Source of the DNA: Phaeosaccion multiseriatum
Taxonomy: Eukaryota > Protista > Ochrophyta, other classes
Reading direction: 5' to 3'
NCBI GenBank assembly: GCA_965112735.1
Contig: OZ218956.1
Location: 558,001-622,000 of the forward strand
Length of the DNA stretch: 64,000 nt
The position numbers and the translations under genes were made by a program. The notes beneath the pieces were generated by a model that was not told the DNA's origin, did no database searches, and saw only the letters and a program-made list of their open reading frames with translations. Shown here in pieces: positions 1 to 18,871 of this stretch. Position 1 is the first letter of the stretch. Every line of letters starts with the position of its first letter.

Positions 1-1450
1 AACGAGCTCACCCCCACCAACACGTCTCCCTCGTCCTCCAGCTCCATCATCGCCGACGGGAGCTGCACGTGAAAGCTGTCCATATCCAGCTCCGGGTTGA
101 TGCTCTCGAGGTGAAGGTTGGCGGGCACGGCGCGGTGCTGCAGCATCAAGACGGCCTTGATGAGCCCGGCAATGCCCGCAGCACCCTCCAGATGGCCAAT
201 ATTGGTCTTGACTGCACCCACTACCAGCGGGAAAGAGTCGTCACGGTTCTTTCCATACGTGGCCTTCAGAGCGCTCATCTCGATGGGGTCGCCGAGCGAG
301 GTTCCCGTGCCGTGTGCCTCCACGATGCGTACTTCGGACCCCTCCCGACTGGCCTCACGCAGCGTCGCCTCGACAAGGCTCTGCTGGGCAGCTGGGCTGG
401 GGGCCGTCAGACGGGCACTGGCTCCATTGTGGTTCACGGCACAGCCTTCAATCACAGCGAGGACCGTGTCTCCGGCAGCGAGGGCGTCATCCAGGCTTTT
501 CAGCACAACGGCACCGCACCCCTCGCCACGCACATATCCGTTGGCCGAGGCGTCGAACGTCTTGCAGCGCCTGAGAAGGTTAATGGGAACAGAGAAAGTG
601 TCGTGGATAATTCGCAGCTTGACGAAGTGCACAGAGAGGTCGGCGGCACTCCCTTACTTACAGGTAAGCACCTCGCGTTTGTGGAAGGCGGCAGTGGTTC
701 ATAGGAGGTAGTGTGAGCGGAACAAGAAGGGAACTACAGGAATCGAAGGCGAGGCAAGCACATCATACATCACAGGAGCAGAAAAACAACACGCAATGTG
801 GAGCAGCCGGTGCCACGTACCAGTCGGGGGAGAGGAAGGTCCCCGCAATCAATGACTGAAAGGTGCTCTTCCCGAGCAGCAGGTTCACGCCACCGACCAC
901 TGCCGAGTCGCACTTGCCCAGGCGGAGGTTGCTGCAAGCAGCGTCCAGAGCCACCAGGGACGACGAGCATGCTGTCTGCAGCAACGCGCTGGGACCGCAG
1001 AGACCCAGAGTGTAGGATACGCGATTCGCAATGTTCGAAGCTGTCAGGCCCATTCCGCCGTAGGCGCTCTGAGCAGTGGTATCTCCTGCCACGAAGCCCC
1101 AGTCCGTGTCCGACAAACCCACAAACACGCCGGTGTTGCTGCCCCGTAGGCTGTTCTTGCTGTGGCCCGCGCGATGGAGGGCCTGGAAGGCCACCTCCAG
1201 CATGAGGCGCTGATTGGGGTCCATTGCCTCTGCCTCGACAGCACTGATGCCAAAGTAGGCATTATCGAACATCTCAACGCCCTCAATGAACCCTCCATGT
1301 AGCTGCACCTCGCCCTTATTACTCTCCCACCTATCATTTGGCGCTGCCGTGATGCAGTCTCTGCCCTCGCACATCAACGACCAGAACTGCTCCGGGCTAT
1401 TGGCTCCACCGGGGAGGCGACACGCCATACTCACCACAGCGATGGGGGCT
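1..1450 (-). other. PKS module 3 KS domain (module continues beyond window)
   Basis: QTACSSS, EAHGTGT, KTNIGHLEGAAG; window ends at VLVGVSSF. Confidence 0.9.
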
Positions 1451-4400
1451 GGAGAGTCCGAGGACAAGTGTTGTCCTGTCAGCACCTTTTTACCCTCCTC
1501 TACATTATCCAGCACCTCAAGAATCTGGGCCTCGAGCCACGCGGCCATTGCAGACACCGATGGATACGAGAAGAAGGCGCCATTCGAAACGGGGACACCA
1601 CACCAGGCCTCGATTCGATTGCGAAACTCCACGGACGCCATCGAATCGAGTCCGGCCTCCATCAAGGGCGTCGTTGCTGCTAAGGTGAAGTCCTCGCCAA
1701 CACACTCGACTGCCATACCCGTCAGGACTTGCTCGATCCTCTCCCGCCGTGCTGACTCCGGCAAGAGCAGGAGCTCCTCCCGCACCTCGGCGTTGACGCT
1801 GTACCCTCTTGACGCCTCATCATTTTCTCCGCGGTCTGTCAATTGCCCGAGGAAATCGCTGTGCACCGGGTCCAAGCTCGCTCGAAATCTGTCCCACCTC
1901 ATGGCCGGCATGACGGCCACCTCCTGTACAACGGCTTGCGCTTGACTTGCAAGGACGGCATCCAGAGCCTTCATACCTAGCGCCGATGAGATCAGGCCCA
2001 CTCCGGTCATCTCCGCAGCTTTGGACACCATTTCAAGCCGCACCGCCATACCCACGTCGCCCCATGGGCCCCACTGAATGTTGGAAGCAGGAAGGCCAAG
2101 CTGGCGTCGGCGGTACCGCATCAGCCCGTCCAATGCAGCATTGGCCCCGGCGTAGGCGCTCTGATTGGACAAGCCAAGCAAAGCCGAGGTCGATGAGTAC
2201 GAGGCGAAGAAGTCGATCTCCTCCCTGCCGCTCGCCACCCACTCAAGGCACAGCGCGTGGAGATTCCAACCTCCCTGGATCTTGGCGGCAAAGACTTTTC
2301 GCACGTTTTGTTCCGTCTCGCCCGACAACATTCCCTTTGCGCCAGTCACACCCGCTGCGTGAATCACACCCCGAACATGAGGCAGCCCCACCAAGGCCGT
2401 TGCTACAGCATCTCGAAGCTGGCCCATATCGGACACATCGCAGGCCACGGCCACAGCGGTGAGACTTTCCATGCTCTGCAGGGCCTCCCACAGCTCTGAA
2501 ACTTCCTCTGCCGCCCGGCCGCTTCGAGAGAGGAGGAGCAAGTGTCGAGCACCCTGGGAGACCAAGTGATTCGCCGTCGCCAGGCCCAGCCCCCCCAGAC
2601 CACCGGTGATCAGGTAGGTCCCATCCTCCCTGCACGTGAAGCGATCGACTCCTGCCGACGTCAGATGGAGTGTGCTGGGCACCAGCCTCGGAGCGAGGAT
2701 CCCACACCCTCGAACCAGCAGGTCCAGGCCTCGTCCTCCGTCCTGAGCTTCTGCAGCCAGCGTCACCGCCTGGGAGACAGTTTGGCCTTCCATCTCCTCT
2801 ACTCCAGGTCGAGCATCCTCAGACTGTGGAGACGCGGCACACTCAACGTCCACGTGGCTCACGGCGAGGTCTCCCCGCTCCAGGCGTATGCTTCTCACCA
2901 GTCCCACTGCCCAGCTGTCCTGCCAACCAGCACCGCTGTACACACCCGTTGTTACCACGGTGATCGGCATCACTGCCTCGTCCCCGTCCAAGCTCTGTAC
3001 GGTTTGCACAAAATGGATTGCCCCGTCGGTAGGAGAGCACGTCCCTGACACCAGGTAGAAGAGATGGGCCCCACGCGGCTGCGCGTCCGAGCCGACCGCC
3101 TTCACCATGTGCACATCCACACCATTTGCTGTCGCCGCGCTTCGGACAGCTTCCAAGGCTCTGTGGATGTTCGAAGCGTGCTGCCCTTCAGCTGCCTCGG
3201 GAATCACGACGAGCCACGGAAGACCGCCGGTCAGCGAAGCCTGCTGCGAAGCCTCGGGCAGCTGCACCGCCTCCCACTCAACAACATATAGCGGGCCCTG
3301 CTCCGCTTCACTCCGCGTCTGAGGTGCAGCGGTAGCTCGCGCTGTGTACCAAGGAAAGACCTTACGCGTTGGGAACAGGATGTTCTCCTTGCCCTCATGC
3401 TCTTGCTGCTGCACTGTGCTCAGAGCCGCTCCAAACGAATACTCGGCGTTCTGCCCTAGCGTGAGGGAGGAGATCCACGCCAGCCCCCCGCGACGCTCGC
3501 ACTTGGCTCCCATGCTGCTCAGCACAGGGTTGGGGCCCACCTCAACGATGCTCAGGTCAGCCCCCCTCCCGTCTCCCATCCAGTGCTCCACCACCGTGTG
3601 GATGCCTTCTGCGAACAGCACTGGCGACAGCATGTGTTGCACCCAATACGTCGCCTGCGTCACCTCCTCCCCTCTCACCACCTCACCCGTCACGTTGGAC
3701 ACCAGGGGAATGCGTGGGGCGCTGAATGACACCTGCCTCAGAACCTCCTCCAGCCCACGTACAGCGGGCTCCATCAGAGGAGAGTGGAAGGCGTGCGACA
3801 CCTCCAGGGCCTTGCAGCCCACCCCATCTGCCGTGAGCTTCTCCGCCACCTTGTCCACAGCACTGCGAGCTCCAGAGATCACGCTCGCGCTCGGTCCATT
3901 CGACGACGCCAGCACCACCTCGCCTGCCCCCCCCGCAGCGTCGATGCTTGCCAAAGTCGCCTCCTTGCCTGCCCTCACTGCAAACATCACCCCCTCCCCC
4001 TCGGGGCAGGCCTGCATGGCGGCTCCTCTCATGGCGGACAGCATCAGCCCGTCCTCCAGCGACATGACGCCGGCCACGCACGCCGCCACTACCTCGCCCA
4101 GGCTGTGGCCCATCACCATGGAAGGCTCCACGCCCTCCGACTTCCACAGCTCACACAGGGCGTACTCCAGCACAAACAGGCACGGCTGGCAGTAGCGTGT
4201 CTCCTTCAGCAGCGCTTGTGCACTCTCCTCCTCCTCCTCCTCCCCGTCCTCAGCGACCGCTGGGTACATGAGCTCCACCACAGACTTGTCCAGCCAGGCC
4301 CGCTCCATGAGCAGCCTGCTGCACCGCTACACGCACTCGCGGAACACGCCCTCCTTCTCGTACAGCTCCCTGCCCATGCCCACGTACTGCGATCCCTGCC

Positions 4401-7400
4401 CTGTGAACAAAAACGCCACTGGAGTATCTGCTTGACGGGCACTAGGGCCTGGCGCACCCTCAACCCTCTTCCCATGGCTCCTCAGCAGCACGTGTGCATT
4501 CGTTCCTCCTGCCCCGAACGAGCTCACCCCCACCAACACGTCTCCCTCGTCCTCCAGTTCCACCATCGCCGACGGTAGCTGCACGGGGAAGCCGTCCATG
4601 TCCAGCTCCGGGTTGATGCTCTCGAGGTGAAGGTTGGCGGGCACCGCGCGGTGCTGCAGCATCAAGACGGCCTTGATAAGCCCGGCAATGCCCGCAGCAC
4701 CCTCCAGATGGCCAATGTTGGTCTTGACCGCACCCACTACCAGCGGGAAAGAGTCGTCACGGTTCTTTCCATACGTGGCCTTCAGAGCGCTCATCTCGAT
4801 GGGGTCGCCGAGCGAGGTTCCCGTGCCGTGTGCCTCCACGATGCGTACTTCGGACCCCTCCCGACCGGCCTCACGTAGCGTCGCCTCGATGAGCCTCCGC
4901 TGGGCAGCTGGGCTGGGGGCCGTGAGGCGGGCACTGGCTCCATTGTGGTTCACGGCACAGCCCTCAATCACAGCGAGGACAGTGTCTCCAGCAGCGAGGG
5001 CGTCATCTAGACGTTTCAGCACCACGGCACCGCATCCTTCACCACGCACGTATCCGTTTGCCGACGCGTCGAACGTCTTGCAGCGCCTGAGAAGGGCATG
5101 GGTAGCGTGAGGGGAGTTTTAGTCGGCGGCGCAGGTAAAGTCGGACGATTTGCCAGAGAGGAGCAGAACCATAAGTGCAGAGGAACAAAAAGGAAGCACT
5201 TACCAGTCCGGCGACAAGAAGCCGCTGCCCTGAATGTCCTCAAAGGCCACTGGCCCGAGCAAGCAATTGACGCCCCCGACGACAGCGGAATCGCACTTGC
5301 CCATGCGTAAGCTGCTGCAGGCGTTGTCCAAGGCCACCAGCGATGACGAGCACGCCGTGTCAGTGGTCATGGACGGGCCCTGCAGCCCCAGCACGTACGA
5401 GAGCCGATTGGCAACGCCACATTGGATGCGACCCATAGTGCGGTATACTCCAGCCCCTACATCCTTGCCCTGGTAGCCCCAGTCGCCGAGGCTCATCATG
5501 CCGATGAAGACGCCTGCCCGACTGCCCGCCAAGCTTGCTTTGTCGCACCCCGCGTTGACCAATGCCTCGTATCCAACCTCCAGCATCACTCGCTGGTGCG
5601 GATCCATCGCAGCCGCTTCGGCAAACGAGATGCCGAATACGGCGGGGTCAAACATTTCCACCTCAGCAATGAAGCTGCCTTGCCAATCCTTGCTCCCCTC
5701 TTTTCCCGCCCACCGGTTCAGAGGGGCAGTCTGAATGCAGTCAGTACCTGTGCGCAGCATTGACCAGAAGGCCTCTGGACTGTTCGAGCCCCCCGGGAAG
5801 CGGCACGCCATGCCCACAATAGCCAGGGGGGCAGTCATGCTACCTCCAGCCGGTTCAGCATTCCTCTCCTCATATTCACCCTTCTCAGCCCCCAAGACCA
5901 AGCCCTCGAGCCACACAGTCAGCGCTGCCACTGAGGGGTGACTGAAGAGCACGTCGTTGGGGACGGACACACCGAAGCGAGCTTGGAGTCGACTCCGAAG
6001 CTCCACCGTAGACATGGAGTCCAGCCCAGCCTCCATCAAAGGCCTCAAAGCGTCGAGCTCGATGCCTGCTTCCCCAATGCATGCTTTTGCCATCTCCATG
6101 ATTAAAGCCTGCAGCATGGGCTTTCGCTCTCCCTCCGAAAGCTCCAGTAGGTCGCGCTTAACCTCGGTAGTCACACTGTTGCTAGCCTTGTTCTGCGGTC
6201 CAACCATTGAAGCCTCTCTAACGAGGGCATCAAGCATCCCCGGGTTGCCAGCAGCCTCAGAGAAGGCGGGCCAGTCCATGCCAGGCAGGACCAAGAGCTC
6301 GCGCGATACCGCAGATGGGGCTGACACGCCGGCATCAAGCGCCGCCATACCCAATGCCTTACTGATGAGCCCAACGCCGGCCATCTCCAGACTGGCCATG
6401 GCAACTTCGGACCGGGCGGCCATGCCAGCTTCGCCCCACGGCCCCCACTGGAGGGCCACAGAGCTGGAGTGACCGAGACGCCGACGATGCTGCATCAGCC
6501 CGTCCACAGCAGCGTTGGCTGCAGCATAGTTGGCCTGGCCTGCATTGCCTAACACACCTGCCATGGATGTGTAGGACACAAAGAAGTCCAAGGGCCAGGC
6601 CATCTGCACCGACAGCTCGTGCAGATTCCAAGCGCCCTCCACCTTCGGCTTGAAGACCTCTTCGATACTCTCGGGCGTCTGGTCCACCAGCAAGCGATCG
6701 TCGAGCACACCAGCAGCGTGGATGACACCTCGTACGGGCGGCATGCTGCTGAGCGCCGTGCCTAGGGCCTTCTCAAGCGACTGCGCGCTAGACACATCGC
6801 ACGATACAGCCTTGGTGCTCACCCCGCCGGGCACGGTGAGAAGCTCCTCCCACAGCGACTGGGAGTCCGCCTTGACCTTTCCCCCTCGCGAGAGCAGTAC
6901 AAGATGACGAGCTCCTTTCTCAGCCAAATGCTTCGCAGTCGCCAGCCCCAGCGCCCCCAGCCCACCGCTGATGACGTAAGTCCCGTCTCGCACGACGGGA
7001 ATGCCACACTCAGGGCTACTGAGCACAACCTTCCCAATGTGCTTCGCAGTTCTGAGGAAGTTCATTGCCTCCACAGGCTCATCCCTCAAGTCGAATGTCT
7101 TCACTGGTAGCGCCTCGGCCCTGCCCGCCTCACTGTCCGCTGTCAGTTGCTCCAGCCTAGTGAACGCCCAGCCCTGCTTCTCGGCCTTGAAGTCGTCTGC
7201 TATCATGGAGTCCAGTGCAATCAGCTCGTACAACACGTCGGGCCTGGCAGCCTTCATCGCCTCCCTGGTCCACACGCCTCGCTTGCCGATCTCCACGAAG
7301 CGCCCGTTCTTCGTCAGCAGCTCCAGAGAGTAAGGGATGAAGTTGTCGGACAGGCAATTGAGCACCACATCCACCTTTGCAGCTCCCATGGAAGCCTTGA

Positions 7401-10400
7401 AGGCCTCCGCATCTCGCGACGACGCAATGTTCTTCACGCCCAGGCCTCGCAAGTAGGCGTGCTTCTCCTCGGATCCAGCAGTGGCGTAGATCTCCGCTCC
7501 GATTCGCTGAGCAATCTGCACGGCCACCAGACCCACTCCACCTGACGCGGCATGGATGAGCACCTTCTCACCACGCTTCAAGCCAGCGAGTTGCTCAAAG
7601 GCGTGCACCACTGTGAGCCACGCGACAGGCAGCGCTGCCATGTCATCGAAGGTCCTGTTGGAAGGCATGTTGGCCAGACACACGTCACTTGTCGTTACGT
7701 GGGAGCAGAAGCATCCCTTGTCCGGAAGCCCGTAGACCTTGTCTCCCACTTGAAAGCGCGAGTTTCGCGACGCTCGAGTGACCACCCCCGATAGCTCGAT
7801 GCCAGGCTGTCCAGGGTCGCCAGGGTACAGGTCGAGCACATTCAGCACGTCTCTGAAGTTGAGCCCCACCGCCTTGACACAAATTTCAATCTCCCCGTCC
7901 TGCAAGGCAGCGCGTCTCTCGGAAGGGAGTACGTCTCTGCGCTTCAAGCCTCCCTCGATGCTTCCCCTCGCCATGAGATCGAAGGAGAATGGGAGGTGTG
8001 CATCTGTTGAGGGCGTCAGCTGAGGCGTGAGATATCGTCCGTCTCGCACCCACATGTCCTGCCCCAGTGACGCAATGGCCCAGCACTTGGGCAGGTACTC
8101 GCTGCCCGCGTCCACCACCGTGATGGCCAGCGAAGGGTGCTCAACACGAGCGGTTCGAATCATGCCGTACACCCAGTGATGCATCCACCCCTCGCCGCCG
8201 CTCAGCGTGTCCTGCACTAGCACCATCAAGGGAGCAGGCCTTCGTAAAAGCTGCTGTAGCAACAAGAGGAGTGTCTGTGCCTCTTGGCTGGGGCTCTGCT
8301 GCTTGCCGCCGAACAATGTCCACACCACACGGTCCCATCCTGCTGGCGCTTCTGAAGCGAGGGTGGAGTCGTCGATGATCTTGACCTCCCTCTCCGTCAG
8401 TGTCACGGAGATGGGCAAGCTCTCTTTCGCTGCCTTGTCCAAGCTGCCACTAGCGCCGCTGGTGAGGAGCAGCCAAGCTTCTTCTCGCTCTTCCACGTCA
8501 CCTCTGCTGGGGGAGATGGAATCGTTGGGCAGCCACTCTAGAGAATACAGCGCTCGGCTGACCGGGTTGGTGCGGGAGAAGCCTCGGGCCAGCTGCATCC
8601 GGAAGTGGTTGAGCTGCACGAGCACTTGCTTCGTCTCGAAGTGTGCTATCACGACGTCGCACTCGATCGCAAGGGCTTGAGAGTCCACCTCCTTCACCAC
8701 CGCATGCACCCACACCTTCTCGCTCGTGATGGCCCCTCGCACAAGCACCTCTTCGCAGCCGGTGGGCAAGAAGACGGCGGCAAAGGCCTTGCTCGTCAGC
8801 TCCTCCGGCAAGAGCGCCAGCATGGTGTGCGCGGCATTATCCAGCACTGCAGGGTGGAGGTAGAAGCCGTTGATCTCCCACCCCGCCGATAGGCTGCCAT
8901 CCATTGCCGCCGCAACCGACAAGGCCTGTCCACTGGCGGCGAATAGGTGCTGCGTTCGGACAAAGCTAGCACCGTAGTCATAACCAGCACTGGCAAGCTT
9001 GAGGTAGAGCCCCTCGGCGATGTCCTCGTCCCCCACCGCGGCTCTCACCCGCGCCACGTCCAATGCCTCTGCCTCCGTCCTTGTGCACAATTGAAGGGAA
9101 GTCGCCTTCGCCACCGTCTCTCCAGCCTCGCCGTGGGGACCTCCGATAAACTGCACGCTGCCGCGGGCAGTGATGAAGGCACTGACTTCAGAAGCGACCA
9201 CAGTGGTGGAGCCCTCCACCGTACGGTCCACATCGGGGGCACGAGCGCCTGCAATTTCCAGTGGAGCCATGAAGACCAGGCCCTTCAGGACTACTTGCCT
9301 CTCGCCAGGGAAAGGCTTGCCCTTCAGCAAGGCGGCAAGGCCAATCTCGATGTACCCCATGCCCGGCATGAGCACCACTCCTCCCACCGCGTGATCTTGC
9401 AGCAAGCCCTTGAGCTGAGGGGTGAAGCGGCATGAGAGGAGTGTTCCTCCCTTCTTCTCGACGATGCCGCCGCTTGGGACCATCGCATGCGCCTGCTGCT
9501 CGAACCAAGGGAGCGCACGACGGGTGGGGAACAGAGGTGTGGGTTTGCCCAGCACTGCCGCCACTGCTGTGTCGAACGAGGCGGTGTCGCTCCCGTCCCG
9601 CCGCATGGACGGCTGCCACATCACGTCCGATCTCTCTCCCTCGCATTGCCGCGCCATGTTGATCAGCACAGAGCTGGGCCCAATCTCTACCACTCGTACA
9701 CCTTCAGGCCTCTCCCGGAGCAGCGTGTGGATGCCTTCTGCGAACAGCACTGGCGACAGCATGTGCTTTATCCAATACGCCGCCTGGGTCACCTCCTCCG
9801 CCTTCACCACCTCGCCCGTCACGTTGGACACCAGCGGGATGCGGGGGGGACTGAGTGACACCTGCCTCAGAGCCTCCTCCAGCGCACGTACAGCGGGCTT
9901 CATCAGGGGGGAGTGGAAGGCGTGCGACACCTTCAGGGCCTTGCAGCCCACCCCATCTGCCGTGAGCCTCTCCACCACCTTGTCCACAGCGGTTGGAGCG
10001 CCAGAGATCACGCTCGCGCTCGGTCCATTCGACGACGCCAGCACCACCTCGCCTGCCCCCCCTGCAGCGTCGATGCTTGCCAAAGTCGCCTCCTTGCCTA
10101 CCCTCACTGCGAACATCACTCCTTTGCCCTCGGGGCAGGCCTGCATGGCGGCTCCTCTCATGGCGGACAGCATCAGCCCGTCCTCCAGCGACATGACGCC
10201 GGCCACGCACGCCGCCACTACCTCGCCCAGGCTGTGGCCCATCACCATGGACGGCTCCACGCCCTCCGACTTCCACAGCTCACACAGGGCGTACTCCAGC
10301 ACAAACAGACACGGCTGGCAGTAGCGTGTCTCCTTCAGCAGCGCTTGTGCACTCTCCTCTTCCTCGGCAGCAGGATATATGAGCTTCACCACAGACTTGT

Positions 10401-13400
10401 CCAGCCAGGCCTGGTCCTGCAGGAGGTCATCGCACCGCCGAACAGCTTTACGAAAGACCTCACGCTATTGAGGCAGCGAACGAGAAGCACGCAAAGCAGA
10501 GACAAGAGAGAAAAGCATATGAGAACGAGGGTAGGTGGCCGAGGTGATGCGAAGCGACGGAGAAGACAAGAGGAGCGCTGACAGACACAGAGGTTAAAAC
10601 GAGCAAGCGAACTCACCTCATCGTAGAGCTCCTTGCCCATGCCGGGGTACTGGGAGCCTTGCCCCGTGAAGAGAAAGGCGACCGGAGATGCGGCGACCTC
10701 CGTCTTCCTCCTCGTCGGTGTCTTCGAACCCTCCCCCTCCACTCTCGGCGCAGCGCTGCTCAGCACCACATGGGCGTTGGTGCCTCCTGCTCCGAACGAG
10801 CTTACTCCTGCGTACAAGAGCTCGCTGCTGCCATTGGGGTGTCCCTCGCCACTCAAAGGGTTTAGCCTGGACGACGGGAAGGCCACCGCAAATCCATCAA
10901 TGCCCAGCTGAGGATTGAGCGTGCCGAGGTGCAGATTGCCCGGAGCAGCTCTCTGCTGAAGCGCCAGGACGGTCTTGATGACTCCCGCGATGCCTGCGGC
11001 GCCCTCCAAGTGACCAATGTTAGTCTTGACCGCTCCCACCATGAGTGGGAAAGAGCTCTCCCGCCCTTCTCCATAGGCGGCTTTGAGGGCGCTCATCTCC
11101 ATGGGGTCGCCAAGAGCCGTGCCGGTGCCGTGCGCCTCCACGAAGTGAACCTCGCTGCCCGCTACGCCCGCCTCCTCCAAGGTTGCCTCCATCAGCGTCT
11201 GCTGTGCGTCTGGACTGGGTGCTGTGAACCGCATAGAGCGTCCATTGTGGTTCACGCCGCTTCCCCGCACGACGGCCAGGATGTTGTCTCCGCTGCGCTC
11301 CGCGTCGTCAAGCCGCTTCACCACCAAGGCGCCGCAGCCCTCTCCTCGGACGTAGCCGTTAGCCGCTGCGTCGAACGTCTTGCAGCGCCTTCGGTAGCAG
11401 CACGAGGCAGATGGGGGCAGAGAAGGAAGGACAAGCCGATGAGAGGGATGATGCTTGTGTATACCTGTCAGCAAGCCCTCAATGACTGTACTCGCATTAC
11501 AGGAGCTCGATGCTCCCCAAGGCCAGCCCCCCCATTGTCCCATACGTACCAGTCCTTGGACAAGAAACCTCCCTTGTCGAGCTGCTCGAAGGAACGGGAG
11601 CCGAGTAGCAGGTTCACTCCTCCCACAACCGCAGCTTCGCACATGCCGAAGCGAAGGTAGCGACAAGCCGTGTCCAAGGCAACGAGAGAGGAAGAGCAAA
11701 GTGTATCAAGCGATATGCTTGGGCCTCGCAAGCCCAGTGCGTAGGACAGGCGATTTGCAGGGCAGCCCGCTGACTCGCCCATCATGGAGTGAGCTTTGGT
11801 GTCACCATCATTGTTGAGCGCGGCCCAGTCGCCGTGCTGCATGGAGCCCACGAACACTCCGGTGTTGCTGTTGCGCAGCGTGGCCACAGAGAAGCCTGCC
11901 TCGTGCAGCGCCTCGTATCCGACCTCGAGCATGATGCGCTGAGTGGGGTCCATGGCCTCGGCCTCGGCTACGGAGATGCCAAACGTGGCGTTGTCAAACA
12001 TCTCCACGCCGTCGATGAAGCCTCCGTGCCACTCCTTCGCCGCACCAGTGAGTCTTCCCGGGGGCATGGCGGTGATGCAGTCCCTTCCCTCCAGCAGCAT
12101 GGACCAGAAAGCGTCGGGACTGTCTGCGCCTCCAGGGAAGCGGCACGCCATGCTCACTACTGCAAGCGGGGCAGAAGCGTCGCCCCCCCCTTCAGACGAT
12201 GGCATCCTCCTGGACAGGCGCAGGCTGCTTGCACTTCCCTCCATGAGCGCCGAGCCCAACCACTCCGCCAAGGCCGCCACGGTGGGGTGGGCGAAGAGGG
12301 CGGCACTGCTAACGGGAATGTCCGTGAGCAGGTGCAGACGCTGCCTCAGCTCCATGAGCGCCAACGAATCCATGCCAGCCTCCATGAGAGGCTTGTCCAT
12401 GTCGATGCCGACAGAGCCTGCCGTGCTGGAGAGGGCGATGTCGGAGATGACGGATCGAAGCCTCTCTTGGCGTTCAGCTGGACTGACACCGCGGAGCTCT
12501 ACTGCCAAGGAGTTTCCGGCCGCCGATGTCGGTGTGGCGGGCAGCAGCTTGAAGGCCTTTCTGTTTGTGAACGGGGAGGCTCTGACGTTGGTCTTTTCTG
12601 CTTGTGATATGGCCGTCCCCTCCAGGATGACGTGGGCATTGACACCGCCAAACCCAAAGGAGTTGACGGCTGTAAAACAAGCAGAAGCAACCACCGCGAG
12701 CAGAAGGGCAAGGTGAGAACGGGTTCAGTCATCTACCATCATACGATACCTCATACACTCACAAAGTCCTCTTTCGCTTGTCTCAAGAAGTGGGTGAGTG
12801 AGAGTGAGTGAGAGTGAGTGAGTGAGTGAGTGAGTGAGTGAGTGAGTGAGTGAGTGAGTGAGTGAGTGAGTGAGTGATTTAGTGAGTGAGTGAGTGAGTG
12901 AGTGAGTGAGTGAGTGAGTGAGTGAGTGAGTGAGTGAGTGAGTGAGTGAGTGAGTGAGTGAGTGAGTGAGTGAGTGAGTGAGTGAGTGAGTGAGTGAGTG
13001 AGTGAGTGAGTGAGTGAGTGAGTGAGTGAGTGAGTGAGTGAGTGAGTGAGTGAGTGAGTGAGTGAGTGAGTGAGTGAGTGAGTGAGTGAGTGAGTGAGTG
13101 AGTGAGTGAGTGAGTGAGTGAGTGAGTGAGTGAGTGAGTGAGTGAGTGAGTGAGTGAGTGAGTGAGTGAGTGAGTGAGTGAGTGAGTGAGTGAGTGAGTG
13201 AGTGAGTGAGTGAGTGAGTGAGTGAGTGAGTGAGTGAGTGAGTGAGTGAGTGAGTGAGTGAGTGAGTGAGTGAGTGAGTGAGTGAGTGAGTGAGTGAGTG
13301 AGTGAGTGAGTGAGTGAGTGAGTGAGTGAGTGAGTGAGTGAGTGAGTGAGTGAGTGAGTGAGTGAGTGAGTGAGTGAGTGAGTGAGTGAGTGAGTGAGTG

Positions 13401-16006
13401 AGTGGGTGAGTGAGTGAGTGAGTGAGTGAGTGAGTGAGTGAGTGAGTGAGTGAGTGAGTGAGTGAGTGAGTGAGTGAGTGAGTGAGTGAGTGAGTGAGTG
13501 AGTGAGTGAGTGAGTGAGTGAGTGAGTGAGTGAGTGAGTGAGTGAGTGAGTGAGTGAGTGAGTGAGTGAGTGAGTGAGTGAGTGGGTGAGTGAGTGAGTG
13601 AGTGAGTGAGTGAGTGAGTGAGTGAGTGAGTGAGTGATCACAGGAAACGTTTCTGAATATCGGCCCCAACGCACCTCCGATTCGGGTGGAGATGGGGGTC
13701 ATGCCTCCGGGGGTGGGTAGCAGAGCGCTGTTGCCCTCCGTCTTCAGTGCAGGGTTCAGCGTGGACAGGTTGAGGTTGGGAGGCGCTTGGACATGCCTGA
13801 GCACCAGCACCGTCTTGATGAGCCCCGCAATGCCTGCCGCAGCCTCCGCGTGACCAAGGTTGGTCTTGATCGCTCCAACGACGAGACGGCGGGCTGTTGC
13901 CAGGTCGTGGTCTCCGTAGGTGCCGGCGATGGAAGCCCACTCCGTGCGGTCCCCGAGGGGTGTGCCCGTGCCGTGCGCCTCGATGAAGCTCACATCGGAC
14001 AGAGCGATGCCCGCCTCTGCTACGGAGTCCAAAACCGCGGCCTTCTGTGCCGCTTCGTTGGGGGCGGTGAGGGTCGTGCCGAGGCCCGTGTGATTGATGC
14101 AGGAGCCTCGAATCACCGCCAATATGCTGTCTTGGGCCTCCATGGCGTCTTCGAGGCGCTTTAGAACGACGGCGCCGCAGCCCTCTGCTCGCAGCCGCAG
14201 GGCACAAAGCAACATATGGAGGTGACTGGAGGGTGAGCTGTGGGGTAGTCGAGCCGTGTTCATCAGGTCTGTCAATAAAAAGAGGACAATCTTAGATCCA
14301 AAGAAACACTCCTTGCTCCCTCATTCCCTCTCCCTCTCCCACTCCCGCTCCTGCTCCCTCTTCCCCTCTCTCCCTCTCCCCGCCTCCGCCTCTCCCTCTG
14401 CCTCTCCCTCTCCCTCTCCCTTTCACCGCCCTCCTTGCTGAGCTGGAAAGGGCCGTGAGTCAGAATGCTGCGGTAAAGGCTCCTCTACATGTGTATCTCA
14501 TTCTCGTCCTTCTATTCTTCTTTGCAGTCTCGCAGGCGCCGCCCGTTCTCACCTGCCCGCACGTAGCCGTTGGCGGCAGCATCAAAGACCATGCACTTCT
14601 CCGACAGCAAGTGCAGCGAGGACATGGCGGAGAAGGGCTCAAGGCTGGTCATGATGGATACTCCTCCAGCCAGGGCCATGTCGCAGTCGCGGCTTTGGAG
14701 CCCTCGGCAGGCTTGGTGCACCGCCACGAGAGAGGAGGAAGAGGCCGTGTTGATGGTCTGCGAAGGTCCAGTCAGACCGAGGGCGAAGGAGACCCGATTA
14801 GCCACGAGAGCTTCAGAAGCGCCCGTCGCGACGTACGGTCCAGGAGCGTGGGACTGCATTTTTGACATCCAGTCTCCGTTGCCGCACCCGATGAACACTC
14901 CTGGACGTTCGAGAAGAGGACTATGTGGTGAGGTCAGCAACCACCAGTGCATCAGCCAGAGGAGTCTCTCCCTCTTGTGATTCGCTCGCTGTTTGCTTCA
15001 GTCCTCACCACTGAAAAGGATACATCGACCCACCTGTTTTGCTCTCAAGAAGAGTTTCCTTGCCAAGCCCTGCGTCGCGAAAGGTCTCGTAGGCCACCTC
15101 CAACATGACTGCGTGAGTTGAGGAGAACGGCAAGGCAGGTGAGACCTTGTTGGTGTTACTGAAGACGAAACAATTCGAGTGACACAAGGAGAGGATTGTG
15201 ACACTTTGCTTACCTCGCTGCTGAGGGTCCATTGCGGATGCCTCCGGGTCAGAGATGTTGAAGAAGGCGTTATCGAACAGCTCTACGTCGGGGAGGAAGC
15301 CCCCCCGCGTGGGGTACCCGCTTTCTCCGCGCTTGAGCTTGTCCAAGGCCGCCGCAGGCTCCCACCTGTGGGAGAGACGTGCGCGAGCGAGGGAGGAGTG
15401 ATTTTGGGAGGCGCCAGCCAGGGCAGTGAAGCAGGTAGAGGGCGGGGTGAAGGAGAGAAAGATAGTGTGAGAGCCATCAGCTCTCGACCGTGTGTACAGT
15501 GATTCTTCAGCCCTCATCCCGTCCACTACCATCCCCAACTCCCTCCCGCCCAACCACTCCAGCAAGATCTGCTGCGGTGGCAGGAGGGGGCGGGGGCAAA
15601 TTGCTAGCTAAACGCCGTGATGCACGCTGCCCATCATCTCCAAGGTTCCGTCGCTCAGACCCAGCCACCGCCCACTCACGCACCTATCTGTGGGCATGTC
15701 TGTGATGCCGCTGCCCTCCCTGCAGAGCAGGTCCCACAGCTCAGGAACGGAATTGGCACCTCCAGGGAAGCGGCAGGCCATTCCAACAATGGCAATGTCG
15801 CCACGACGATGGCCGCCTTTCTCGCTTCTCGTTGGTCCGCTGCCCATGTTTGGGTGCGTGGGGGAGAGAGGCGCCCTTCGAACCTCCTCCTCTTTGCCTG
15901 GCACTGGTGCTGCTGCTGCGGGTGTCTCCGCCGCCGGTCCGTCCCCCATACCTACTGCTGCACCCTCAGGCTGATCCTGCGCCGGCTCCTTGCCGGGCCC
16001 GGGCAT
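1..16006 (-). CDS. Modular cis-AT type I polyketide synthase, 3'-partial, 10 exons in window, one in-frame TAG at 4327-4329
   Basis: Exons with GT-AG borders that join in frame: 16006-15684, 15365-15214, 15108-15034, 14900-14553, 14184-13675, 12669-11550, 11388-10617, 10464-5204, 5086-821, 570-<1. Four KS (MACRxPGG, EAHGTGT, KTNxGH), two AT (GHSLG, HAFH), DH (HxxGGxxxxP), ER (IHAASGGVG), two KR (GGLGxLG, YAxAN), three ACP (GxDS). Start is the first in-frame ATG and is uncertain. Confidence 0.95.
1520..5830 (-). other. PKS module 2: KS-AT(malonyl)-KR-ACP, TAG near the start of the AT
   Basis: KS DTACSSS; AT GHSLG/HAFH; KR GGLGGLG, HAAGVTGA (no LDD), QSAYAGAN; ACP GLDSM. Confidence 0.9.
5900..12170 (-). 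other. PKS module 1: KS-AT(malonyl)-DH-ER-KR(B-type)-ACP
   Basis: KS DTLCSSS; AT GHSLG/HAFH; DH DHAVGGVVLMP and HPAVLD; ER LIHAASGGVG; KR HAAGVLDD and GQANYAAAN; ACP GLDSM. Confidence 0.9.
12250..15800 (-). other. PKS loading-type module: KS with active-site Ser plus ACP, no AT
   Basis: TINTASSSSLVA (Ser codon TCT at 14742-14740); EAHGTGT and KTNLGH intact; ACP motif LMEAGMDSL follows the KS after a short linker with no AT motifs. Confidence 0.85.
12790..13637. repeat. (GTGA)n / (TCAC)n array, about 210 units, in PKS intron 5
   Basis: Nearly pure array inside intron 12670-13674; splicing restores RIG-AVNSFGFGG. Confidence 0.98.
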
Positions 16007-17596
16007 TCTCTCTCCTCCTTGGCCAGATCCAACGCTGGAGGGGAAGTGAGCAAGCACGGGAGTAGCGATGGTGAGAGAGAGACCTTGCTTCTTCTCCCCC
16101 CTTGCTTGGAGGAAAGGGATCGAAAGGGAGTTATGAGGAGCGAGGCCGGGGGGGGGGGGGGCAGAAACAGAGGGTTATGGGCCGTGCAAGCGTGTAGGGC
16201 TTGAAGACACTCCTTTGGGAGTGCCGATGGCCTGAACAGCAGCGCAATTTTCCACGGAAGTATTGCGCGTATCTTGCGCGTTTGGGGCCAAGATAATATT
16301 TTTTTAAACCTCGGGTTGGAGGTTCAGCTCGTAGCTACCCACCTTTTTTCTTCCTTCTTATCCTCCTGTTCCTCTCCTCTGCCGAAGTGTAGTGTGCCAA
16401 CAAGGCAAACTCTTTATTTTTGAGGTCTTCTTGGATAATCCTTTTCGGTTTCATTTTTTTGAACCAGCTCTCAGCCCTGCGTGCTTACACTGTATGGTAT
16501 TCGATCGAAACGCACAATATTTAGAACCCGAGCAAGGGGTACTATAACAATGTAGAAAGCCGCCGACGACGATGACAGTGATTGGGACGACGAGACTTGG
16601 ACGCAAGCCGTTGCTCTGGCAGATGCAGCCGCTGCTTCGGTGCAACCAGCAACCGCCTCAAAAGCGGGCACTCAAGCGGCAGTCCTCTTCTCCTCGCCCT
16701 ATCTCTCTTTGCCTCTTTCTCTCTCTCTCTACCACCCTCTCCCTCTAGACTGAGCTTGCGACAATCGTCGCAGCACAGGAGGAGAGGCGGAAACAATTGC
16801 AGACAGCTAAGCAGAGATTGAAAAACGAGAAGGCGGCCGGCTGTAGAAGCTGCTTACAAAGTTCGAGGAGGACGAGGCCGGCCCCTGAAGGGAATAAGGG
16901 AGAAGCTGCGGTTGATTGGTGCAGCTATGAAAGGAATTGATGAGGATTTGCTGCCCCCAGTGGAGAAGGAAGAGAAGCGAAAGAAGGAGAGAAGCGCAGA
17001 CAGGGTAGACGTTGCAAGTAGTGACCACTTAAGAGGTACGGCCGTCTAAGCGGTACGTTCTCAATTATCTCCTCTTCCTTCTTGATGCCTGGCTGCTCTT
17101 GTCTACACCCCCCACCCCCCTCTTGGGCCTCCCTTTCTGAACATACCTTGACACACTTCTTCCCCCTGTTGTTCTCGCCCCCTTTTTACATGTGCTAACA
17201 GGGGTAAGACAGACGAAGATGAGGACGAGGAGGATGGAAGTACGGGCGAGGAGGGGGGCGGTGGTGGTGGGGGGGGGGTTGGGAAGAAGAATAGACCACC
17301 AGCGCAGACTGAGTTCATCAAAGTAGCACTCGAGGCGGCAAGGGATCCAAAGGAAGGGTTGCCTACCTGGCAAACTCCCTACTTCAGGGCCTCGGATGAT
17401 CGGCCTCGACGCCAAGCCGCCAGTCTGAAGTGGGAGTTACGCCCAGCTAACGTGACGTTTGTCTGGGGCCCCCCACCTCTTCCACAACCTTGGAGAGGAC
17501 CACCAGTAGCCTCTTTGCGCATGGCATGCATCGTCACAGTGTGTGCAAGCTTATGGGTGGACGTCGCCGCAGCGGGCTGTGTCTGTCACCAGCTTC

Positions 17597-17760
17597 GAGG
17601 AGGAGGAGGAGGAGGAGGAGGAGGAGGAGGAGGAGGAGGAGGAGGAGGAGGAGGAGGAGGAGGAGGAGGAGGAGGAGGAGGAGGAGGAGGAGGAGGAGGA
17701 GGAGGAGGAGGAGGAGGAGGAGGAGGAGGAGGAGGAGGAGGAGGAGGAGGAGGAGGAGGA
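17597..17760. repeat. (GGA)n microsatellite, about 54 units
   Basis: Direct observation. Confidence 0.98.
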
Positions 17761-18871
17761 TGAGGAGTAACAGCAGGAGTGGGAGTAGCAGGTGGTGCTG
17801 CTGCTGGAGGAGAAGGGGGGGGGGAGGAGGAGGAGGAAGAGTTGCAGGTGCTGCTGAGGCTGGAGAAGGGGGGGGGGGAGGCGGAGGACGAGGAGGGGGA
17901 GGAGTAGGAGCAGCAGCAGCAGCCGCAGCACTGTGGCCCGCACGGGGAGGATCAGGGGCAGGAGCATCTGTAGCGCCTGCAGAGGCTGCTGCTGCAGAGG
18001 GTGGTGTTGCTTTCGGAGGAGGTGAGAGTACCCACGAGAAACAGCTATGGAAGAGGAGGGAGGCCGCGAAAAGGAGAAAAGGAGAGGCAGGCGAGGAGGG
18101 AAAGGAGAAGGCGAGGCTCCAGAAAAAGGCAGCGCGGGAAAGGGAAATATTACAGCAGGCTAAGCACGGGCCTGGAGGATGATGTACTCGTTTCTGTGTA
18201 CATCGTATTGTATATACAACACTTAGGTCTTCCACAGTTGCCTCTACTTTGGTGAGGACAAGGAGAGTCGATAGAGAGGGGCGGCGCCGCAGGCGGGGAA
18301 AATTTCTAATTTCTTTTTGTTCTCCTTTTTTGGGCCGACGGTCGACGCCACAATGAGCCGACTTCCCACCCCCCTGGGTACTTCGGAGCGTTGGCCGCCC
18401 AATCTGTTGGGCAAAGCCAGTAAGCCAATTACACCACACAAAATGTGCGAGCGAGAGGCCAGACCAATTCAAGTACTTGAGTCCGCAAGGCACATGTGTG
18501 CAGTAACGAGAGCGTGGGCCCCGGAGTGCTGACATACGCGTTGGCGCCTGACTACGTCGTCGTCGCCAGCAGGGGGCACGACACGGTTCTCACGGTTCTT
18601 CAGCCGTCTCTAGCAGCCCCCACAAGCCACTCCTGCCCGCACCAACGTTTCTGTCCATCCTCGTCTCCAGTCTGCCTTCAACGCGTCCCTCGTACCTACC
18701 TACACACCTGCCCTGCCAGCCAGCCGACAAGCAGCAGTTGGTGATACAGCCGAAGTCGGCGATACAGCAGCAGTTGGAGATACAGCAGCCGCGGTTGGCG
18801 ATACAACAGCAGCGGGAGAGAGGCTGGAGGACCCCGGGGGTGGCTACCTCACACTCACGCACTCTCACGCA

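Follow-up and report, generated by a model that had tools for sequence, protein, structure and literature searches.

Multimodular polyketide synthase (PKS) genes of microalgae grow by module duplication and by loss or displacement of acyltransferase (AT) domains, and the heterokont Aureococcus has more than 50 fragmentarily annotated ketosynthase (KS) domains, according to Shelest et al. 2015 (PMC4661987). In word searches of that paper, introns come up only in a figure legend, with nothing on their positions. Here we analyze a giant, intron-split cis-AT type I PKS gene whose 5' part lies on the minus strand at positions 1-16000 of a 64,000-nucleotide stretch of the Phaeosaccion multiseriatum genome (assembly GCA_965112735.1; 67 Mb, 22 contigs). 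We refer to this whole stretch (contig OZ218956.1, C7 in our numbering; C7:558001-622000) as the window and give negative numbers to positions before its first letter. Relative to the PKSs of Shelest et al., the duplications in this gene can be followed base by base, and an intron that recurs with the module marks every KS. Based on the comparisons described below, we propose that the intron is inherited and has occasionally acted as a seam for DNA recombination in a multi-module cis-AT type I PKS gene of a stramenopile alga, a reading that we consider probable.

The closest described systems differ from this gene in distinct ways. The PKZILLA genes of Prymnesium parvum are likewise giant modular algal PKS genes in which small GT-AG introns separate very large exons. 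However, the three PKZILLA genes have just 34 introns although their modules are far more numerous, and no periodicity of one intron per KS is reported for them (10.1101/2024.01.29.577497), whereas here almost every KS has the intron. Bacterial PKSs evolve as mosaics by recombination and gene conversion (PMC8256042, PMC6718629; see also PMC1592344). Their recombination and gene-conversion hot spots are the KS-AT linker and the post-AT linker, named in PMC6718629, and the updated module boundary, and homogenized KS-AT blocks are common gene-conversion tracts (PMC8256042). The Phaeosaccion gene resembles them in having junctions at the KS end or KS-AT linker (about +600 nt) and after the AT (near 3417), and homogenized KS-AT blocks in otherwise different modules. 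Unlike the intronless bacterial genes, it appears to have, beside these two common kinds of junction, a third class within the KS, at the intron some 30 residues before the Pfam N/C boundary, that would re-assort KS halves. Our literature search found no paper tying intron positions to PKS modules. The intron-per-KS periodicity and the half-KS seam therefore look new, while module duplication and mosaic evolution are already known.

Three KS domains of the window, KS2, KS3 and KS4, are each interrupted after the second base of TGG in LSxDW^RCKTFD (a caret marks the splice point). The introns are:

11389..11549, minus strand: KS2 intron, 161 nt, GT-AG, phase 2, in the Trp codon of FLSKDW^RCKTFD
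5087..5203, minus strand: KS3 intron, 117 nt, GT-AG, phase 2, in the same Trp codon
571..820, minus strand: KS4 intron, 250 nt, GT-AG, phase 2, in the same Trp codon; putative seam of two module types

The junction letters are ..GACTG^GTACGT...GAAG^GCGCTGCAAGACG for KS2 (11549..11389), ..GACTG^GTAAGT...TCAG^GCGCTGCAAGACG for KS3 (5203..5087) and ..GACTG^GTACGT...TCAG^GCGCTGCAAGACG for KS4 (820..571), and more than 30 nt of identical exon sequence follow each acceptor. An earlier sequence-only reading of the window had placed the three introns at these coordinates, in phase 2 and in one Trp codon, and each point was borne out base by base on the minus strand. It had also asked whether KS domains beyond the window share the intron; KS5-KS8, through which the gene continues for about 29 kb past the window start, all do. 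KS7 (about window -18109, C7:539891) carries it with an acceptor, found by eye, before the variant motif RTASFG in place of RCKTFD, and may be a non-condensing KS. KS1 is continuous at the shared site (..LLSEKCMVFD..) and has another intron about 11 codons further on. As a separate observation, KS1 reads ..TINTASSSSLVAV.., with the active-site Cys replaced by Ser.

The intron extends well beyond this gene. A genome-wide search with PF00109 gave 121 matches. In 117 of them the match breaks off between profile positions 220 and 243 (of 252) and picks up again at 218-224, 100-470 nt further on; three others run through to 252 and one is incomplete. We then parsed 56 KS at the base level, from 50 fetched loci and this gene. 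GT..AG ends, phase 2 and a GGN or TGG codon at the shared site are found in 54 of them, and codon position and phase are identical in all 54 introns resolved at both ends. The other two, including KS7, have the same donor. TGG is no more than a local variant here; the bacterial motif, DGRC, has Gly at this position. The shared intron is also present in the FAAL-primed PKS class of the genome (L001, L008 and others), and a three-member subtype (L002, L004 and L010) is continuous there, reading ..LLSKVGRCAAYD... The intron is not special to the modules of this gene, and comparison of the loci suggests one ancestral intron copied with each KS.

To place the intron in time, we looked at the nearest relatives. 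In the word-search database no protein was more than 62% identical to the KS C-half, and the closest proteins, at 44-62% identity, were those of Chrysoparadoxa australica. Five KS sites of this species (L054-L056; GCA_964200425.2) are continuous at the shared codon; therefore the intron appears to have arisen, or to have alone survived, in the lineage before the family expanded, an age bounded by the Chrysoparadoxa comparison only. At the same Chrysoparadoxa loci, one 2000-residue model is a single 6000-nt exon. We propose that one ancestral phase-2 intron in the Gly/Trp codon of LSxD(G/W)^RCKxFD was copied at each KS duplication, both within genes and among some 20 related gene clusters. KS2-KS8 would then be cut at one codon, at intervals that are multiples of three, because a single intron was inherited by duplication. 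Since nearly every KS of the genome has the intron, its recurrence in KS2-KS4 is attributed to homology and not to chance or special design.

Between the introns, the gene has the layout of a modular cis-AT type I PKS. PF00109, PF02801, PF00698, PF14765, PF00107, PF08659 and PF00550 match in order and far above their cut-offs. Along the open frames the order is KS1 C-half; acyl carrier protein (ACP) and KS2 N-half; KS2 C-half and AT start; AT, dehydratase (DH), enoylreductase (ER), ketoreductase (KR), ACP and KS3 N-half; KS3 C-half and AT start; AT, KR, ACP and KS4 N-half. The remaining features of this part of the gene are:

14515..14997, minus strand: KS1 exon, without the shared intron
11550..12169, minus strand: KS2 N-half (Pfam)
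10617..11388, minus strand: 772-nt exon from the KS2 C-half to the AT2 start (Pfam and junctions)
10465..10616, minus strand: AT2 intron, phase 0, GTGAGT..TAG, splitting the unit that precedes the KS3 intron
5204..10464, minus strand: 5261-nt exon with the rest of AT2, DH, ER, KR, ACP2 and the KS3 N-half (Pfam)
821..5086, minus strand: 4266-nt exon with the KS3 C-half, KS-AT linker, AT3, KR3, ACP3 and the KS4 N-half (Pfam)
3417..5086, minus strand: KS C-half and AT block (identity comparison)
4327..4329, minus strand: in-frame TAG in AT3, between ..RECV and RCS..
1..570, minus strand: start of the next exon, with the KS4 C-half, continuing beyond the window start

Coordinates and Pfam matches agree with the earlier description of exon 5086-821 as 4266 nt running from a KS C-half through AT, KR and ACP to the next KS N-half. 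The lengths given for the unit before it (772 + 5261 nt) are also right. Their divisibility by three, also pointed out there, is no independent evidence, because two introns that share a phase in one reading frame necessarily lie a multiple of three apart. The AT2 intron, a second positional intron, follows ELYDE. Every KS2-type module of the sister clusters carries it (loci L014, L016, L017, L021-L023, L034, L035 and L048), and AT3 and the other ATs lack it.

We next compared the KS domains on the two sides of the shared intron. Single-break-point scans over 52 KS give break points that cluster at -28 to +27 nt from the intron, with the best break points of KS4 at -8 to +27 nt. Identity of KS4 to L047, L053 and L039 is 0.9-0.97 over at least 2.3 kb before its donor, a stretch that takes in the KS N-half, ACP3 and KR3; immediately after the acceptor, identity to this type drops to 0.75 and then to 0.4. 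Against the KS3/L024 type the pattern is reversed, with identity of 0.5-0.65 upstream and 0.9-0.98 downstream of the intron. The near-identity of the KS3 and KS4 C-halves, already noticed from the sequence alone, holds at 94.6% over 1679 nt including the AT (about 95% for the C-half proteins), whereas their N-halves are only 62-65% identical. In all 11 further members of the KS4 N-half type, introns of 140-160 nt lead into the other C-half, which is 0.69-0.71 identical. Full-length homologs of the KS4 intron are confined to two sister clusters on contig C2: L073 and L074 share the KS4 arrangement together with a long intron of 254-258 nt that is about 80% identical over its full length. Because they share both arrangement and intron, the KS4 arrangement would be one event older than the split of the three clusters.

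KS3 provides a second example. In six sister clusters the N-half is 98-99% identical to that of KS3 and is followed by a homolog of its intron, 95-119 nt long. In three other clusters, the difference between KS3 and its positional homologs (L036, L038 and L019) is confined to the 600-nt N-half (0.43-0.9 identical), with identities of 0.94-1.0 upstream of it and 0.91-0.98 downstream. The block at 3417..5086 shares 94.6% identity with the one that follows the KS4 intron, and its identity to the L024-type modules in other clusters is 0.9-0.97. In a further case, a patch of 300 nt beginning at the acceptor is 0.92-0.98 identical between L006 and L029.

A simple measure of excess type combinations was uninformative and we therefore used an explicit type table, which covers 67 distinct KS of the approximately 121 in the genome. 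In this table one C-half type occurs with three N-half types (N-halves 0.64-0.73 and C-halves 0.91-0.96 identical) and, conversely, two C-half types share one N-half type. The two halves of the N-half exon show no comparable discordance in the same 67 KS, and two discordances lie inside the C-half. The same exon-bounded unit thus stands beside different partners with the junction at the KS intron, as in exon shuffling. The KS4 intron itself may retain a trace of its origin: it is similar to one parental intron type over its first 20 nt (z 3.4-5.2) and to the other over its last 19 nt (z about 2.2), and its interior aligns to neither. Based on these data, we propose that the intron has been an occasional DNA recombination seam at which N-halves, and C-halves with the following AT, were re-assorted in about three events. 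Recombination, as crossover or as gene conversion ending in the intron, would account for the discontinuities of identity seen there.

Several points weigh against this proposal. The seam events are few (about three), and they come from one genome in which 67 of about 121 KS were parsed. KS1 and the three intronless KS (L002, L004 and L010) make the intron rule less than absolute. The evidence that the KS4 junction falls inside the intron is modest, and comes from intron ends of 19-20 nt. Constitutive removal of the KS introns is deduced, though we think it most likely. Finally, it is a live alternative that conversion of the C-half and AT merely stops where homology ends, with no intronic crossover.

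This last alternative is the strongest rival. Under it, gene conversion makes the seam, its tracts stopping where the diverged introns cannot pair, and the intron is a passive barrier; we regard it as possible, though distinctly less probable than the explanation that we favor. It fits the finding that at least 21 KS, belonging to three N-half types, have the same C-half and AT block (0.9-0.97 identical), as well as the patch of L006 and L029, where nothing but the 300 nt from the acceptor is shared, and KS-AT gene conversion is widespread in bacteria (PMC8256042). A conversion-like tract in the AT core of module 2 has ends that ignore the AT intron. On the other hand, the KS4-type intron exceeds both parental types by about 100 nt and has an unmatched interior, which fits non-homologous joining better, and conversion alone does not explain why the order of intron-to-intron units differs from that of the sister clusters. 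We also considered introns as general barriers to conversion and rejected the idea, given that the AT-core tract common to modules 2 and 3 begins some 110 nt past the AT intron site.

The sequence-only reading had taken the exon between two KS introns as the unit of module duplication, and this stands in part: the KS intron is a recurrent seam, with KS4 switching type at it and one C-half type joined to three N-half types. However, duplicated blocks do not in general begin and end at the KS intron. Modules 4, 5 and 6 form a tandem repeat with a period of 6287 nt, essentially 100% identical and 2.1 copies long in the assembly (C7:543792-557083), where it adds one complete module. Here window -917 to -7920 (7.0 kb) and window -7204 to -14208 differ in one base only. 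This newest duplication has its junction zone in the C-terminal part of the AT, 1520-2239 nt after the KS acceptor, and over the 750 nt that follow the KS4 intron, identity to the corresponding part of module 5 is only 62-73%. The ends of BLAST high-scoring segment pairs had suggested a repeat beginning at the KS4 intron; sliding identity puts the start of the 100% block in the AT, and this boundary was discarded. In tandem KS pairs, L024/L025 for instance, identity extends across N-half, intron and C-half, and divergence sets in at +612 nt, the KS end. The 821..5086 exon is itself a mosaic, with an internal post-AT junction near 3417, about 100 nt after the AT match, that ends the KS3 block; most other junctions lie in KS-AT or post-AT linkers. 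The exchange of KS3-type and L024-type N-halves without the upstream ACP or KR speaks against the related expectation that the upstream processing domains and ACP travel with the KS N-half.

Another question is whether this gene copy is still functional. As the earlier reading had described, a TAG at 4327 lies in frame inside exon 5086-821, which is one open frame except for this codon (4329-4327). About 30 parsed paralogous ATs have Gln (CAG) at this position, or in one case Leu, and read depth at the TAG is dominated by paralog contigs. Two one-base deletions outside the window, at C7:554024 (window -3976) and C7:551868 (window -6132), break the frame in modules 4 and 5. If the TAG, standing where paralogs have CAG, and these deletions were real, the gene would be a decaying pseudogene and questions of programming would be moot for this copy. 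We consider this unlikely. Both deletions are C6 to C5 homopolymer differences in otherwise 100% identical repeats, a typical long-read consensus error, and are likely to be assembly errors of this kind; the TAG and the frameshifts together may all be assembly errors. Everywhere but at these three sites the frames stay open, over 1187-2065 codons, and domain scores are normal. The stops that appear within KS matches come from reading through introns. Two other accounts of the TAG were set aside: a sense codon, in view of open frames of up to 2065 codons with no other in-frame stop, and a small unrecognized intron, in view of flanks that align codon for codon with paralogs.

We then considered whether the module exons are skipped by alternative splicing. 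Phase-symmetric exons can be inserted, deleted or skipped without loss of frame, and the number of titin repeats is set by alternative splicing. Compared with exon shuffling and titin-like genes, the units here are 4-6 kb long and bounded inside a catalytic domain, and their symmetry would be a by-product of duplication. The idea put forward from the sequence alone was a splice-programmable assembly line, in which donor 5204 joins acceptor 570, or other long-range joins form, so that modules are skipped and a shorter synthase and shorter chains result. We judge this very unlikely. In its favor, the flanking introns are all in phase 2 with long identical exon sequence after their acceptors, the hybrid KS would be near-native given C-half proteins of about 95% identity, and skipping 5086-821 would remove the TAG. 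Equal phase of flanking introns, as in cassette exons, is nevertheless automatic for homologous introns, and the same geometry in about 117 KS means that it is inherited, not designed.

The splice sites do not look like those of a skipped exon either. Cassette exons tend to have weak or regulated sites and to be short relative to their introns, and this is not what we find: the donors are strong (GTAAGT or GTACGT), and the acceptors have a pyrimidine tract followed by CAG or AAG. In short introns, splice sites pair across the intron. Such pairing is favored here, where introns of 117-250 nt flank a 4266-nt exon. Exon skipping is rare where short introns flank long exons, a general pattern (PMC6142364). 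RNA-seq of the PKZILLA genes, which are the best studied of the algal giants, showed one major transcript per gene (10.1101/2024.01.29.577497).

A search for RNA runs that contain this sequence gave four runs of one sample and none that is RNA. We compared these four over window 1-6000. Their contigs span the whole 250-nt KS4 intron at unique-sequence depth (for example, a 275-nt contig at 552-826), and because the entire intron is covered the four runs behave as DNA. The only long-range joint, from 518 to 5033, has a depth of 7.9, a 21-nt anchor and the ends CC..CG instead of GT-AG. It connects corresponding positions in the near-identical KS C-halves and is a repeat chimera of the contig graph, not a splice junction. 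The splicing idea has no support yet. That module exons would be skipped often enough to yield a family of shorter-chain products, which would also rescue a TAG-bearing transcript, seems to us highly improbable; in the explanation that we favor, an inherited intron with an occasional seam, the KS introns would be removed constitutively. Weakest of all, and in our view close to negligible, is parallel gain at a hot spot by independent insertions in many KS: introns of different KS types are largely unalignable, but such loss of similarity is expected for old introns, codon position and phase agree in 54 of 54 resolved introns, and homology of the introns is clear within each KS type and partial between types.

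Two low-complexity tracts lie in or near the gene. At 12789-13637 on the minus strand, about 850 nt of a strongly GC-skewed 12-nt microsatellite, which reads (SLTH)n in all three frames, sit between the KS1 C-half and the ACP exon, and the tract is probably intronic because no KS end motif precedes it. Upstream of the PKS gene, at 17550-18160 on the minus strand, there is a long tract that reads poly-Leu, poly-Ser or poly-Pro according to frame.

If the seam reading is true, this algal PKS family holds a natural junction inside the KS, at ..LSxD(G/W)^RCK.., where halves from modules that are 62-73% identical have been joined and kept in several clusters. D(G/W)^RCK would then be a candidate fusion site for PKS engineers, who seek tolerated sites of this kind. 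Introns would also give eukaryotes a route of their own to the kind of mosaic evolution that is known for assembly lines of bacteria.

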